In this document: positions 56,753 through 64,000 of the stretch, in pieces
Layout: the number at the start of each line of letters is the position of its first letter
Position numbering within the stretch: position 1 is the stretch's first letter
Program-made: the position numbers and the translations under genes
Notes under the pieces: model-generated
Database searches by the model: none
Told to the model about the DNA's origin: nothing
Seen by the model: only the letters and a program-made list of their open reading frames with translations
Source of the DNA: Trichosphaerium sp. ATCC 40318
Lineage: Eukaryota > Protista > Tubulinea
DNA: 64,000 nucleotides
Assembly (NCBI GenBank): GCA_038496445.1
Contig: JALMLS010000093.1
Coordinates: forward strand, 310,001-374,000
Direction of reading: 5' to 3'

Positions 56753-56942
56753 CTGTTACTGTTGTATGTTTCAGTATGATGGTGAACACGTACAAGTGTT
56801 TTTTCCATTGTCTGTTACGCCAAGATGTCTGTTCTTGAACACGTGACTTATTTTTTTCTGCAGAAAGATCCTAGAAGAATCGACTATAACAGTAGGTACA
56901 GGTAAAACTTTTCTTATTTATTTAATTTACTTCGACACTCAA

Positions 56943-59900
56943 TCACTCTTTTTCATGCCTCTTTTTTACACCATCTAACCAACGATGTGCTCTTTTATAA
57001 AGCTGATCTCTAACTTCTTTTGTAACTGTATTAGAATGTAACGTGACACCCCATGCATCAACTTTATATCTTCCATTCTTAACCAAAGATTCTAAAAAGT
57101 CAACAGGATCTTGGTCATCAGCGTTCTGAGGTTCTTTGCTTTTATTGAGCTTAACAATTGTAAGGAATGTATCGTATACCTAGAAGCAATGTATAAGAAC
57201 ACAATACAAGAGAATATAACAATAAAGAAAGCGTACTTGATCAGCCATTTTGATGTCACCACAAACATAAATTCGAGATCCTTTTTTAAGCAAGTCATAA
57301 ACTCTTTTTGAGTTTTCAAGTAACTTATCCTGTACATAAACCTTGTTCTCTGTTTGTCTTGAAAAAGCAACATGTAGCTCTGATATAGCATATCCGTCTC
57401 CTTTTGCTGCTTCAGCAAGTTCTTTCTCATAGATATAGTCATGAGCTTTATTCCGGCAGCCAAAGAAAAGCATAGCAGATCCAAGATTCTAAGAAAAAAA
57501 AAAGTAAGAACAATGTTTGGTCGAAAACAACACGTGTTTCAACATACGATTTTCCATTTTTTGAGTTGTCCTCGCTCACACCAGAAACCTCTAAAAGGAG
57601 CTAAACCAGTACCAGGACCTACCATAATGATAGGTTCAATTGGATTCTCTGGTAAATGAAAGTTTGATTTTCTCCAATATATCTGAATATTAGAACCGAC
57701 TTTCTTTGAAGCCAAAAAGTGCGAGCAAACGCCCTTTATTTTATACCTACAAAATGATTGTAAGTATTTATTAATGTAGAGATAGCACAAAGTTATGTAG
57801 AACATGACATACCCAGATTCTAGTTCAATGGTAGTCACAGCAACTGTGATAGAAATATTATTTGGAGATGCACTTGGACTTGAAGAAATAGAATAAAATC
57901 TTGGCTTCATGAGCGGTAAGCTCGTTATAAACACACCAAAAGGTACTTTAATCTGCGATAAAAACATCATGTGAGTTTAAGTGGTTTTTAGGAGCGCAGA
58001 GGCTATTAATCTGATTACCTTTTCAAAATGTTCCAAAAACTCAAGAACAGTCGGAAATCGGCATAAAACTTCTTTGACGAGTTCCTACAATATCGAATCA
58101 GTACTGATCAGATACTACGTTTCGTACCCCTCTATCCTCCCTCTTTAATTGTCTTATAAACTTTGTTATTGTTGGGTTATCATCCGCAGTACAGTATGGA
58201 AGTAATTGCTTGAAAAAGAACAAAAGCTGACTTGGTGCAAAATTGTGAAGTGCCTAAAACAAAAAATGATTTAGATCAGATGCTTTTTTCTTAAGTTGTA
58301 TCTTGTGTGTGTCACTCTCTTTCTCTTTACGTACCAACTCAACTTTAGTCCTAAACGCATTCATGACGCTCATTGGCAAAGACCAAGCAGCATATCCTAA
58401 AAAAGAAAAGTCAGAAATCGCTCCAAAAATGTACAAAAGAATAACAACTTACCTGGAACGTAAAAATGTCCTTTTGGGTCAACATCTAACCTCCTTGCAA
58501 GACTCTTTACTGTTTGTAAAGAATTGCTAGGGTATACAGCAATATGATCTCCTGATTTGTACATACCAGGAATAGCTGTATCAGAGATATCAAGCTCAAT
58601 GTGCCTAAAACAAGATTAGCATAAAAAATCGTTTCAACTCTTTGACATCACGCAAGGTACCTTGTCGATCTAGGAGAAGCTTCTTTATGTAGCTCATCAT
58701 TCTTTGTTATTGTGACCTTAACAGGGAATCCTTGTCTTGTGCCAGGAGTGTGTTTTAGCGTTGCTTTGCTTTTTCGTTTATTGAACTGCTTTGATTCTTC
58801 CTTTCCTATCCACTTTCCACTAATAGCGTACTGTGCTATCATATGGGATTCAGAAGTAGTCTCAGAAGTGCTCAACTCATTATCTAAGAATGAATCCGGA
58901 TACTTTTCTCTTAATATAAGTATAATTGACTTCATCCATGCCTGAACCAAAAAAGTAAGAAAAAAAAACAAACAAGGAGTTTTTGATTTATACCTTAAAA
59001 CTTTGCTCTTGCTTGTCAAGTTCGTCACCCTATAAGTTTGTAAGGATATATAGAGTATATATTAGGAAATTCTAGATGTAATACCTTTCCGAGTGACGAC
59101 AGTACAGTAGCACCAAGTTCTCCCATTTTTTTGTTTATATCTGTTGCAAATTTACAATAATCCGGATACATTGCTATGATCGTAATTAGTTTTTTAATGC
59201 TTTTGATACTTCTTTAGAGGTATTTTTATACTTACTGTTTCCAAGACCGAATACTGCATATGCTAAATTATTCATACACTGTTCAGGCAAGTCAGGATGT
59301 GTCATCCAGTTTGAAAAATTTATTGCATTGCCAGGAGGTTCACCTTGACCAAAAGTCGATGTTATAACAAGCAAAACACCTCCTCTCTTGTTAATATCAG
59401 TCATATCAACGTCATCCATCTCTCTCAGTGCTAATGATTATATATAAGCTTGATAAAACCAAGTGCAAGAAAAAAAGGACTTCACCGACAAAAACTGGAA
59501 AAGGAACTTACCTAACGACGGAAAGCTTGATGAAAGTTCAGCCTTTAAGGCTTCTGCATATCTTTCCGCTGTTCCTGTTTCACTTCCATAAATAATATTC
59601 AGATTTACAGAAGTAGGAGATTTAGGTTGCTTTGTGATTTCAGGTAAAGCTGTCCACGTTTTTGTTCCAGCTCTGTAGCAAGAAGTGAGAAAAATATGAG
59701 AATCAATGACGTACTTCAAAGCGACAGTATCATAGGTTCTGAACATCCCTGGTTTCTGCACAAAGTTACGCATGGCATGATGCCATACAGGACATAAAGA
59801 TCCACTTGTAGGTGGTACGATCCAAGCCCAGTCCGCAGGTGTGTAATTACAAAAGTCAGCAAAGTTGTACCATATTAAAACAACGTATCTCACGACCGCA

Positions 59901-62900
59901 TTTAGCCTCTTGCCGCTCATGTTGAAGAAACTGCATGCTTGCTATTGCAATAGTTAATCATCTTTGCATATTAATGTGAGTTTTACTGTACCTGTATGGT
60001 GGTCTACAAGTGTTACCTTATTTTTAATAAACGAATGAACAACTGCTTTGTTAAATTGTAGCATTACTTCATCTGAAACAAAAAAAATTAGTCGAAACGA
60101 ACGCTTTACTAAATTTTACCTTTCCACATAGTTCTAGGGCTTGTTGTATCTAAATCCATTTTATCGCCTATGACATGAAGCATATTATATCGGTCTATAA
60201 CACGTGGGTTGTAAGAATAACATTAAAGATTCAATTTTGATTTACCTTCTTCCAGTAAATTTCTAGATATTTCTGTTTCCATGTACCAACCTAGAACGCT
60301 CATTTAGAACGTCATTGGGTTATTTGATATTCTTACCGTTGAAAGGGCACATAGTGTAATGAATACCGCCAATCTCAGTTCTAAAATCGGCAATAGCAGG
60401 TACTAAATGAATTCTTAGTGTTGTACATGTCAACGAAAGATTAGCTGGTTTACATACCAGTGTACCACTTTAGTTTAAGATCTTTAAACCAAGTAAACTT
60501 TGGATGCTCTAGCTCAACTTCAAGTATAATATCTTTAGGGAGCTCAAAAATAACAGGAAGCTGTCCTTGCATCTATCGAAAAAAAGTTAATAAGTTAGAA
60601 CAAAAACATAAAAGAAAAGGTAGGAAAAACAAACCTCAATGACTATTGGAAGTATATCGTATGCTGATCTAGTCTTTGGTGGTTCCCAACCAAGCTTCAT
60701 TATAGCTGAAGTCAAAGCAACAGAAGCAGGATCGCCAAGTATTGTACCATCAGGCTTAATGTAACCGCAATATCTTATAAGCATATTATTCCAAATATGG
60801 CACCCAATTTCATCTCCTTTCTTAGGTGCGAAAACAGTCATTACAGACTAAAAAAAATAAATAAGAAACAGAAGTATAAAGTAATCCAAACGCATTTGAT
60901 TTTGAATTAATATCAAACCATCAAAACATCAAAAACATCAAAAACATCAAAACACGTGCCTTTATATTTCCCTTATTTGTTGCTTGTCTGATGTGATCAA
61001 TAAGAGCATTGAAAACAGTGTTTGGAAGCTTGACATGACGCATATCACGAACTGTAATATTCTTCCATTGAATACGTCCTATACACTTTGCTGCATTACG
61101 CCAAGCCATCTAAGCAAAGTCAACAATCATTAATATTAGTGATTTTGGGGTTTTTTGAAAGAAACAGCTGTTTTATCAGTAAATACGAAATCCTTACCTT
61201 GACACCATACTGCAACTCTTCAGTTGTATGTTTATAAGTACCAGAAATAATTATCTCCGTACTGACCTCTTTTAATCTATCGGCAAGTTCATCTTTGTTT
61301 TTTTTTAGCTCACTTAAACAAAGAGAATTAAGTTAAGTTTGTTGAGACAAAGCCGACTTACGAGTAAAGTTGAGTAAGGAATTTCTTGGCTTCATTGTAT
61401 ATACCGAAATAATGGTTTGTAGCGCTTAACATCACAGATATTACTTTTTGAATTAAAACACTCCAAGCTTCAGCAACGTCCTTTAAAAAAAAACGAAGTC
61501 AGTTGAGCTGTTTATCTTTTCGTTATCTAAGCATACAGCTGTCCATTGGTGTTTCATTGACTTAGATAATGCTTTAATAAGAGCTGTAGAAACTGCAGGA
61601 TAGAGGTCTTTATCTATACCTCTTACAGCATGTTCTTTACCCAATTCCTTCACGTTGATGTAAGTTTACAAAGGGTTATAAGCATTTGCGGTTTGACATA
61701 CAACTAAGCGTGGAGCTATTTTTTCAAAGTCTTGTGCTGCATCTACAATAGCTTTAAGAGCGGCCTATTAATAAATCAGATTCAATTTCAACTGATATTC
61801 CTTAAAAGCGGCGTAGAAAGACAAACAAATAGGAAATAGTCACTTTGTGATTTTTTTTTGTTTCGCCACTAACCATCAAATGCTCTTGTTGCTTATCCAT
61901 TCTCGTTGAACCTGATTTATCGATTAAAAAAATTCAAAATATCACGTGATAAAATTAATATACCAAAGTACTCCATGACGGATGGATTATCTTCAAAAAG
62001 GATGGTGTAGAACACCTCGCCCAATTTACGCTTTGCAGAGTTCGATGACATTGCCTTGAACTTGTGTTTAATAATAACATCCGATAATTTTATTTAACCT
62101 AATAACATACCTTGTTCCACGTTGCGACAACTAGCGCTGTATGATCTTCTGTATCATACAATAAAAGAGTGGCATATGCACGCTCTATCTGTTGACCAAT
62201 GTTACACCTATGACGTGTAAGATGACGACAGTCGGAAACATAAGTGATGTTTTACCAAAGTGCGAAAAATGACGTTATAACATTATCCGGGTTAGCGTTA
62301 GCATTATATAATGGTCCTGTCGTTGAAACGACTTCTATTAGAACCTCTCCAGCCTACACTTTTTTAGCTAGAAAGCCGGCTTTTTATTTATCGTACCAAC
62401 TTAAAAAACTCATGGTTTACACCAGTTAACGCGTAATCAACAGCTAAATAATTTTGTTAAAAAGTTTGTTTGGAATTACCCGGCCAGCATTCAAACTGCC
62501 TTATATCGTACCAAATTCTTCTATAATATGTGTAGGAATCTCACACGTGTTACTTTTGGCCAGGTGGTCGATGATCTGACATATTTTGTCAACAAAACGT
62601 TGACCAAGAGGTATTGTATCTAAGATTGGTGTCCTAAAAAAAAGACGTAAGAAAAATAATGAAGAACATTTTGACAGGTAATATCACGTGGTACGGGTAT
62701 TGTTTAAAAGTCTTCTAAATGACGTACTTTATTGAAGGGAAAAGTTCTGGGAGTCTCTTAGCGAAAGTATCCACAGCAACATCTTCCCAGTGCATAACTC
62801 TACGTAAAGGATTTTTTAGTATTGAACGATAGCGCCATATCGTTACCTGTTCCAAACTGTTAAGATTGTTAGCCTGTTAGCTCTAGTTATCTCAGGAGGT

Positions 62901-64000
62901 GAATCAAAGTCTTTGTCAGAAAAGAAATTCTACAACAAGTTAGCGAGAGGGTTTTTCCAAAGCAATTGTACTCACTTTCTTAGCCGCTGCAGTTACAGCT
63001 GTTACCCCAATCATACTTTTGAGTGTTGCTGCTGTAGATTCGCGGTGTATAGGTTTTGCTTGTTCACGCTTTTTCTGTACATAGACTTAACAAGTGTGCT
63101 CATTTCACAACCAAACCAATACTGCGTACGGAATAAATATTAAATTTTAGCTTGGCGTTCAATCGCCTTCCGTCTTGTTTTATAATAGGCAATGTGGTCT
63201 CGTTTCCTTCTGTTTTTATAGAGCTAGATCTCAAAATAACTATGCCTGCGTCCTGTATGAATAGCGTTTAGTGTCAAATAGAAAATTTGTTCCAAAAGGT
63301 GCAGCAAGTGGATAAATATTAAACAAAATATTCCAAAAGTTTTCGTAAGAATTATCGGCCACCTGTGCCGCAATAACAATAAATGTTGACATCATATGGG
63401 TAGCTACACCACTCACTTTGGAGCATGTCAACTTTATCTTTTATCAAATAAAAAAAATCACGTGATATCCGTGCTTGTCGGGTTTTTACGTTACGAACTA
63501 CTTGTCCCAAAAAATTCAGAACCAAAAAAAGAACACGTGATTATCGGGTTTTTTAACACTACTAGAAACCTACTTAACGGAAAAAAAAATAAAAAAAGAA
63601 ACATTTTTGTTAACTTCGAATACACGTACTTTCCATTGTTGTTTACTACCCGATTGTTTTGATGACACTGAGAATTGAAATACTGAGTGAGGTTTCACGA
63701 TAACACCACTATTTTTAAAAAAATTAAAAGCGTCAACACAACACCACAAACAGCCAAAAAAAAACGTGACAACAGTTTTGTAAAACAATCACTGAAAACG
63801 TACAAAGATCGCTCCACAGCCCATGAAAACCCTTTTTCTGTCCTCTGGTCTGCATTGTCAACCTCAATTTTGCGTCGGAGAACCCTGTTAGCTTCACCGG
63901 CTGGATCCAAAATATCAAGAGAAATACGTAATCCACAGCGTCTACTAGGCGGTTGCCATCCATGTAGTTCAATAACTGTGAAATTATGTTATTGTGGGGC
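56943..64000 (-). CDS. NOS: Multidomain nitric oxide synthase: C2-like + pseudoglobin + globin + NOS oxygenase + flavodoxin + FAD/NADPH reductase; 5' end beyond window
   Basis: Oxygenase [38 protein letters not shown]; FMN domain [27 protein letters not shown]; [44 protein letters not shown]; globin [10 protein letters not shown]...KQQEHL...LGKEHAVRG. Confidence 0.93.
59843..59888 (-). other. 46-nt AT-AC intron in the NOS oxygenase region
   Basis: Removing ATACGTTG...GCTGACTTTTGTAATTAC joins CGRE to TPADWAW in frame; no AG acceptor lies before the conserved ADWAWIVPP. Confidence 0.75.

Follow-up and report, generated by a model that had tools for sequence, protein, structure and literature searches.

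Does a heterotrophic amoeba carry, among its nuclear genes, a nitric oxide (NO) synthase (NOS) of the kind represented by syNOS of the cyanobacterium Synechococcus sp. PCC 7335, in which globin modules stand ahead of the oxygenase? This question is raised by a locus of Trichosphaerium sp. ATCC 40318 (contig JALMLS010000093.1 of assembly GCA_038496445.1, positions 310,001 to 374,000). The whole stretch of 64,000 nucleotides is called the window here, and positions are counted from its first base. A syNOS-type gene occupies 56943-63975 on the minus strand, and its 5' end lies beyond the window end (64000). syNOS itself consists of a C2 domain (residues 1-134), a linker, a pseudoglobin (179-339), a globin, an oxygenase (474-852), a flavodoxin and a ferredoxin-NADP reductase (FNR) module with a tail (PMC12922734). 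A preliminary description made from the letters alone had read the amoeba locus as a fully intronised eukaryotic version of this architecture. With good confidence we regard the gene as a nuclear, transcribed and intron-rich multidomain NOS of the syNOS type. The evidence is strongest from the pseudoglobin to the C-terminal tail, and the C2 part is weighed separately below.

Transcription and gene model

Contigs from four public runs (X1-X4) were mapped on positions 58001-64000. Each run contains 11-39% of the words sampled from the stretch, a share that fits the expectation for spliced RNA, and the spliced contigs on the gene derive from three studies. The identity of the contigs to the window is 99-100% in X1, X3 and X4, and 95-99% in X2, which stems from a related strain. 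The contigs are interrupted by skips of 42-81 nt that read CT..AC on the plus strand and represent the GT-AG introns of a minus-strand gene.

A single mRNA joins the pseudoglobin, globin and oxygenase exons. The decisive contig, X3 record 11 (1706 nt), extends from 63324 to 60656. Three of its pieces are listed, and the joints at 62053, 62205 and 62352 carry the depth of the contig (14.8). The 13 exons between 63130 and 61109 sum to 1155 nt, which is exactly the unlisted part of this record. The same joints recur in X4 record 15 (788 nt, depth 10.8), which likewise spans globin and oxygenase exons. The proposal that the globin exons belong to the same message as the oxygenase is thus borne out, as the exon lengths fill the transcript exactly.

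The continuation of the mRNA to the stop codon is shown by overlapping transcript contigs together with P0001, a protein of 1037 amino acids from a transcript contig of 3115 nt of the Joint Genome Institute (JGI). P0001 is 99.6% identical to residues 303-1337 of the product of 1338 amino acids described below (the short form, to which all residue numbers refer), and independently confirms the 3' two-thirds of the gene model. It carries all four domains including NAD_binding_1 (Pfam). We considered P0001 as a globin-less NOS of the Physarum type with 1037 amino acids and rejected this, because its contig is truncated at the 5' end and its 3115 nt are open reading frame (ORF) throughout. Bacterial contamination is likewise ruled out by about 38 spliceosomal introns and by the spliced transcripts.

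Exons were placed by splice sites and reading frame and checked against the transcript contigs. The gene has at least 39 exons and about 38 introns with lengths of 42-377 nt. The mapped model comprises 36 exons and 35 introns, of which 33 end in GT-AG, one in GC-AG and one in AT-AC. Splicing yields a stop-free ORF of 1338 amino acids from the first ATG (63013) to the stop codon at 56943-56945. In the unspliced minus strand, the ORF listing and three-frame translation reveal numerous short stretches without stops that bear motifs of NOS, flavodoxin and reductase. Pfam searches with single stop-free segments recover four families: NO_synthase in eight pieces, Flavodoxin_1, FAD_binding_1 and Globin. 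The Globin match, in one segment (61486-61665; exon 61537-61647), scores 21.7 bits against a cut-off of 22.

Domain organisation

Both globin modules were scored with a profile built from 85 syNOS-type proteins, each represented by its first 520 residues. The pseudoglobin reaches 16.6 bits, in its A-B helices, and the globin 75.7 bits. At the column of the proximal histidine (F8) the pseudoglobin has Tyr109, where the bacterial relatives in the alignment have Phe. Searches of single globin exons and of one pseudoglobin exon against PDB sequences gave matches below threshold for the globin exons and none for the pseudoglobin exon.

The globin retains a complete haem pocket, with Tyr202 (B10) in GEVFY, Gln224 (E7) in MDKQQEHL, His256 (F8) in LGKEHAVRG and Tyr266 (G5) in DLYPAV. 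We assign B10, E7 and G5 on what we take to be their counterparts in Hmp of Escherichia coli. In flavohaemoglobins that dioxygenate NO, such as E. coli Hmp, the same four residues (Tyr at B10, Gln at E7, His at F8 and Tyr at G5) make up the distal and proximal sides of the haem pocket. The last globin exon (61480-61362) runs straight into the N-terminus of the oxygenase, and the globin ends about 20 residues ahead of the oxygenase core. The preliminary description had noted an intact flavohaemoglobin-like globin abutting the oxygenase, and the mapped exons with their motifs agree with it.

The oxygenase domain begins at about residue 310 (IYNEAKKF...) and possesses the haem ligand Cys374, Ile528 and Glu553, the last in GWYMETEIS. 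The first 400 residues contain no CxxxxC zinc site, in accordance with the earlier reading of the globin-oxygenase join, and the N-terminal hook is likewise absent. The only cysteines ahead of the haem ligand are at positions 83, 95 and 155. An oxygenase exon of 71 amino acids (60635-60847) has its best PDB match in syNOS (9q05), with 72 bits against 58 for nNOS.

From the end motif of the oxygenase (residues 648-658), 40 residues lead to the start of the flavodoxin at NIIYGSETG. This linker is rich in proline. Aligned with the linkers of fish nNOS and Hydra NOS, it falls short by about 21 residues, which in those two enzymes make up the calmodulin helix. We interpret the gaps opposite it as the absence of such a helix in the amoeba protein, as had been suspected from the short linker. 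The same alignment has a gap opposite the autoinhibitory insert in the flavin mononucleotide (FMN) domain of the fish and Hydra enzymes. At the C-terminus the preliminary description had closed the reductase too early. The ORF continues for 31 more residues after DAWGVTL, to the stop codon at 56943-56945, and this tail can be aligned with the motif Y-x-[KR]-A-x-x-W in the tails of the cyanobacterial proteins.

Relatives and phylogenetic position

Scanning bacterial genomes and searching exhaustively with HMMER yielded full-length relatives, and relatives carry Pfam Globin directly before NO_synthase. Residues 27-1333 of the amoeba protein align in one blastp high-scoring segment pair with residues 189-1494 of a cyanobacterial (Prochloraceae) protein, L002, at 35% identity. 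Similar end-to-end alignments are obtained with Spirosoma-type and other proteins of 1450-1500 amino acids.

In the oxygenase tree (92 rows, 365 columns) the amoeba sequence falls into the starred clade of 24 globin-NOS-type sequences (support 98*), where it is the sister of P0087, apart from animal NOS. The tree of oxygenase plus reductase (26 rows, 1008 columns) has the same topology, with Shimodaira-Hasegawa-like approximate likelihood-ratio (SH-aLRT) support of 95-99. In the approximately unbiased (AU) test on oxygenase plus reductase, a placement of the amoeba sequence and P0087 with animal NOS is rejected (p 0.00016). This result upholds the claim that the protein groups with the syNOS type and not with canonical calmodulin-dependent NOS. 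Two points weigh against the placement: moving the amoeba sequence to the animals is not rejected when the oxygenase is taken alone (p 0.33), and the amoeba sequence is skewed in its amino-acid composition and sits on a long branch.

Within the clade, the amoeba gene and P0087 branch outside the subclade of cyanobacterial, Spirosoma and other eukaryotic members. These other eukaryotes comprise the chytrid Siphonaria, Phalansterium, a diplonemid cluster and Tribonema, which is present in the oxygenase tree only. Uniting the amoeba sequence and P0087 with this eukaryotic subclade is rejected by the AU test (p 0.001), for a group that was named after seeing the tree. P0037 forms a third basal lineage and is bacterial by its neighbouring genes.

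The closest relatives differ in their N-terminal parts. P0087 (L022/L023; runs SRR33549325/6), the nearest relative, is a protein of 1817 amino acids from a full-length eukaryotic transcript. Ahead of its pseudoglobin lie a Ser/Pro-rich extension, about 300 residues long, and a segment rich in beta structure, and it has no match to the bacterial C2 profile. P0037 (L024 4829-7183; 784 amino acids) shows a weak N-terminal match to the C2 profile, followed by the oxygenase, and is without a reductase. Its gene lies beside an rpsP-rimM-trmD operon, and in the tree it takes a basal position in the globin-NOS clade. Other variants are the cyanobacterial C2-bearing NOS P0190, P0196 and P0208 (about 1720 amino acids, with an extra C-terminal PF18599), and P0239, P0253 and P0256 (about 1520-1540 amino acids), which have EF-hand domains and no Pfam Globin match.

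The 5' end and the C2-like domain

The short ORF begins about 150 residues later than syNOS. Upstream of it, the short seeds QDAGIV and SWAVE led to three candidate exons (A, B and C; Table 1), which, judged by their likeness to bacterial sequences, probably encode a C2 domain. Spliced together, they score 10.8 bits (p 1.6e-5) against a profile of 85 bacterial C2 domains, and profile positions 62-129 align with product positions 62-128. The core of the match scores 9.8 bits, a value that none of 5000 shuffles reaches (best 6.9). An hhalign comparison (p 0.003) aligns FSWAVE of exon A with bacterial PSWLVE. At the exon B/C junction, QQWK/DAGIV aligns with bacterial NPWQDAGMV, and exon C reads DAGIVIL...KLKFNIYS against bacterial QDAGMV...KLKVRLT. 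The G+C content of the three exons (0.37-0.46, exon A 0.46) is exon-like, against 0.31-0.33 in the introns between them.

The first codon of exon A is split with an exon past the window end. X2 record 8 covers 63830-63976 and then continues in frame into sequence from outside the window, ATG AAA CTA TAT GTT GGT G (M-K-L-Y-V-G). With this ATG exon the long form would comprise about 1489 amino acids and carry its C2 domain at the N-terminus, as does syNOS. One contig of X4 ends precisely at 63252, which is how an assembly graph would behave where splicing branches. Of the architecture proposed in the preliminary description, the part from pseudoglobin to reductase stands, collinear with syNOS-type proteins, and the C2 part is probable only. 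Among eukaryotes, the amoeba gene may be the sole member with a C2 domain. If splicing does not use the donor at 63803, the frame of exon A stays open for 35 more codons, which encode a hydrophobic tail, before the stop at 63695-63697; this stretch (63698-63803) might give the end of a short alternative product.

Several observations weigh against a C2-bearing NOS as the product of this gene. No read in the transcript data joins exon A or B to exon C, and neither X3 nor X4 has any depth over the first two of these exons. X3 record 11 continues past the acceptor at 63252 as far as 63324, where a template-switch oligo is attached, and an in-frame stop (63268-63270) lies upstream of this acceptor. 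The C2 match remains below 11 bits, with exons partly chosen by eye, and pairwise comparisons of the candidate with PDB and with the N-termini of P0087 and P0037 gave no significant match. Finally, the short form might perhaps be without NO production, given that a syNOS construct without C2 had no NOS activity (PMC12922734). A tblastn search of bacterial N-termini on 63000-64000 gave no significant match, and scans of metagenomes with exact 23-mers and peptide patterns found no contigs with exon C.

It is possible, if rather doubtful, that the working product is the C2-less protein of 1338 amino acids, with translation beginning at the AUG at 63013 of an mRNA whose 5' end lies at about 63324, and that the C2 exons are decaying or used in a minor isoform only. 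The oligo attached at 63324 fits this reading, as does the leader of 255 nt, which has no ATG before 63011-63013. The depth of X3 and X4 is 0 over 63401-64000, against about 6-11 in X3 across the upstream exons. Such a product would resemble the C2-less eukaryotic relatives (chytrid, Phalansterium, Tribonema), and several relatives of 1316-1379 amino acids start 33-93 residues before the pseudoglobin, with no C2-profile match. However, the reading frame of exon C continues without a stop into the following exon, and in X2 exon A is spliced and expressed, with a depth comparable to the NOS exons. The read-through of the intron could be pre-mRNA, because the same sample has other introns retained, and a second oligo-tagged internal 5' end, at 58942 in the X3 library, indicates that such ends are not proof of a start. 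The inactivity of C2-less syNOS as a NOS likewise argues against this reading. We therefore prefer a C2 domain encoded by exons A-C, and consider the chances about even that the 63324 start represents a genuine C2-less isoform.

X4 record 16 retains the introns 62800-62846 and 63075-63129 yet splices the intron between them, which indicates partly processed RNA in the X4 sample.

Proposed mechanism and implications

By homology with syNOS (PMC6104048, PMC12922734), electrons from reduced nicotinamide adenine dinucleotide phosphate (NADPH) would pass via flavin adenine dinucleotide (FAD) and FMN to the oxygenase haem, where arginine would be converted to NO. The enzyme would act as a dimer in the electron transfer to this haem, again by homology. 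The globin, reduced by the same reductase, would turn part of the NO together with O2 into nitrate. The C2 domain and the tail would gate which haem is served, and this control would not operate via calmodulin. The analysis shows the parts of the enzyme and their order from pseudoglobin to tail; the chemistry, the Ca2+ control and the presence of the C2 exons in the main product are what we infer.

That the globin instead senses O2 or NO or serves as a structural module, and that the enzyme releases NO as a signal like iNOS-like enzymes, appears unlikely. A chytrid relative without the proximal His implies that globin chemistry is dispensable in some members of the family, but in the amoeba protein the B10, E7, F8 and G5 residues are all kept, and the globin of syNOS makes nitrate (PMC6104048, PMC12922734). 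Still less credible is the notion that exon A is part of another, small gene further upstream, with an ORF that ends at the stop 63695-63697 in a hydrophobic tail, and that its C2 likeness arose by chance: the 97 open codons at 63698-63988 with their hydrophobic end, their lack of a homologue in PDB or in a search of 5.8 billion proteins, and the lack of a read joining exon A to exon B would fit, but exons B and C account for most of the profile match, exon C is certainly in the NOS mRNA and its frame, hhalign places exon A in register with the bacterial sequence, and the consensus GTACGT donor at 63803 lets the frames fit over both junctions.

No multidomain NOS other than syNOS has a full-length structure, and the Ca2+ switch that works through the C2 domain of syNOS has been regarded as an oddity of cyanobacteria. 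The transcribed gene described here, rich in introns and carried by a heterotrophic protist, shows that the family is established in the nuclear genomes of eukaryotes beyond the algae. The paired long and short forms, if real, would be a natural test of the need for C2 in NO synthesis. The deep-branching position of the sequence bears on the direction in which the family moved between bacteria and eukaryotes. One might speculate, with little expectation of being right, that the six-domain layout with C2, typically a eukaryotic module, originated in eukaryotes and was acquired from them by cyanobacteria and other bacteria, and that an internal promoter in the 377-nt intron lets the cell choose between forms with and without C2. 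In syNOS, the presence of C2 decides the activity of the NOS haem.

Features of the locus

The coordinates of the domains, of the 5' exons and of the exceptional introns are collected in Table 1.

Table 1. Exons, domains and selected introns of the syNOS-type gene (window positions; residues in short-form numbering)
Feature	Position	Strand	Evidence or remark
Exon A, candidate N-terminal half of C2-like domain (IELHGWQPP...FSWAVERS)	63804..63975	-	X2 record 8; GTACGT donor 63803
Exon B, candidate middle of C2-like domain	63630..63708	-	AG acceptor, GTACGT donor, frame kept from A to C; no read coverage
Longest intron, 377 nt, between exons B and C	63253..63629	-	cDNA 5' end 63324 and two CACGTG
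Exon C, candidate C-terminal part of C2-like domain (...KLKFNIYS)	63130..63252	-	In X2, X3 and X4 contigs; frame open into next exon
Linker exon with ATG 63011-63013, short-form start	62976..63074	-	Spliced in X2, X3 and X4
Pseudoglobin, 5 exons, residues ~14-153	62256..62929	-	Joints in X3 and X4 contigs
Haem globin, 6 exons, residues ~155-326	61362..62207	-	Family profile, motifs, near-cut-off Pfam match
NOS oxygenase, 10 exons, residues ~327-673	59715..61312	-	Pfam NO_synthase on exons
GC-AG intron	60848..60959	-	Joint 60960/60847 in X3 record 11; ends GC..AG
AT-AC intron, 46 nt	59843..59888	-	Joint 59841>59888 in X1, X3 and X4; ends AT..AC
Linker and FMN domain	58994..59672	-	Pfam Flavodoxin_1
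FAD/NADPH reductase with 31-residue tail (56946-57038) and stop (56943-56945)	56943..58941	-	Pfam FAD_binding_1

The AT-AC intron begins with ATACGTTG and lacks a clear U12 consensus. The 42-nt intron at 59673-59714 is in frame and free of stops, and the raw ORF reads through it with 14 false residues in the linker between oxygenase and flavodoxin.

The window contains 67 copies of the palindrome CACGTG, whereas shuffled sequences lead one to expect 9.8 and gave 27 at most. Eight sites lie in the NOS gene (57531, 60201, 60953, 61943, 62544, 62685, 63459 and 63534), seven of them in introns and often as ATCACGTGAT-like sites, and one more is found just past the stop codon, at 56840. It may be a genome-wide intronic or regulatory motif.

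Comparison with known systems

The oxygenase of the amoeba protein starts at the same place as the oxygenase-only NOS of Bacillus subtilis, and both are without the hook and the zinc site; the bacterial enzymes lack a fused reductase and globins. We take two further likenesses to be shared with Bacillus NOS: an isoleucine close to the haem, and RN in place of RD behind the Glu motif. The flavohaemoglobin Hmp has the same Tyr B10, Gln E7, His F8 and Tyr G5 pocket and likewise combines it with an FAD/NADPH reductase in one chain. In the amoeba protein, by contrast, the globin stands N-terminal to a whole NOS, and the reductase is of the diflavin P450-reductase type and not the FNR module of Hmp.

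With NOS A and B of Physarum and with animal iNOS, the amoeba protein shares the core of oxygenase, FMN and FAD/NADPH domains, the lack of the autoinhibitory FMN insert, and a C-terminal tail. Physarum and animal NOS differ in their calmodulin-binding linker and in having no globins, and the Physarum genes have 27 exons (PMC2677215). For Amoebozoa, we found only the canonical NOS of Physarum discussed in the literature (PMC2677215, PMC7400543). The amoeba gene and the homologue in Phalansterium suggest that this picture of amoebozoan NOS, previously drawn from Physarum only, is incomplete.

NOS with N-terminal globins have been published for cyanobacteria, Spirosoma, diatoms and Tribonema (PMC6104048, PMC7400543, PMC8728061, PMC12922734). 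The eukaryotic representatives (the diatoms Pseudo-nitzschia and Skeletonema, Tribonema, and here also Siphonaria and Phalansterium) have the globin before oxygenase and reductase and belong to the same starred clade (PMC8728061, PMC6104048). They differ from the amoeba gene in that those examined have no match to the C2 profile and form a separate subclade. The classification of the amoeba gene as a eukaryotic member of the syNOS class is thus supported by its family placement and collinearity, but its novelty is less than the preliminary description implied, since eukaryotic globin-NOS were already known from diatoms and Tribonema (PMC6104048, PMC8728061, PMC12922734).

The closest correspondence is with syNOS of Synechococcus sp. 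PCC 7335 (PDB 9Q05/9Q06) and its relatives in cyanobacteria, Spirosoma and Acidobacteriota. The order of domains is the same from pseudoglobin to tail, collinear over about 1300 residues, and the abutment of globin and oxygenase, the lack of a zinc CxxxxC, of a calmodulin helix and of an FMN insert, and the tail motif are all shared. Identity is 33-35%, and the amoeba gene differs by its approximately 38 introns and a diverged C2 (10.8 bits). It also has Gln at E7 where the cyanobacterial proteins have Leu, and Ile528 where some of them have Val. A possible internal start that would give a C2-less form is likewise unlike syNOS. The amoeba gene is a deep-branching, intron-rich eukaryotic addition to the known syNOS family and founds no new one.

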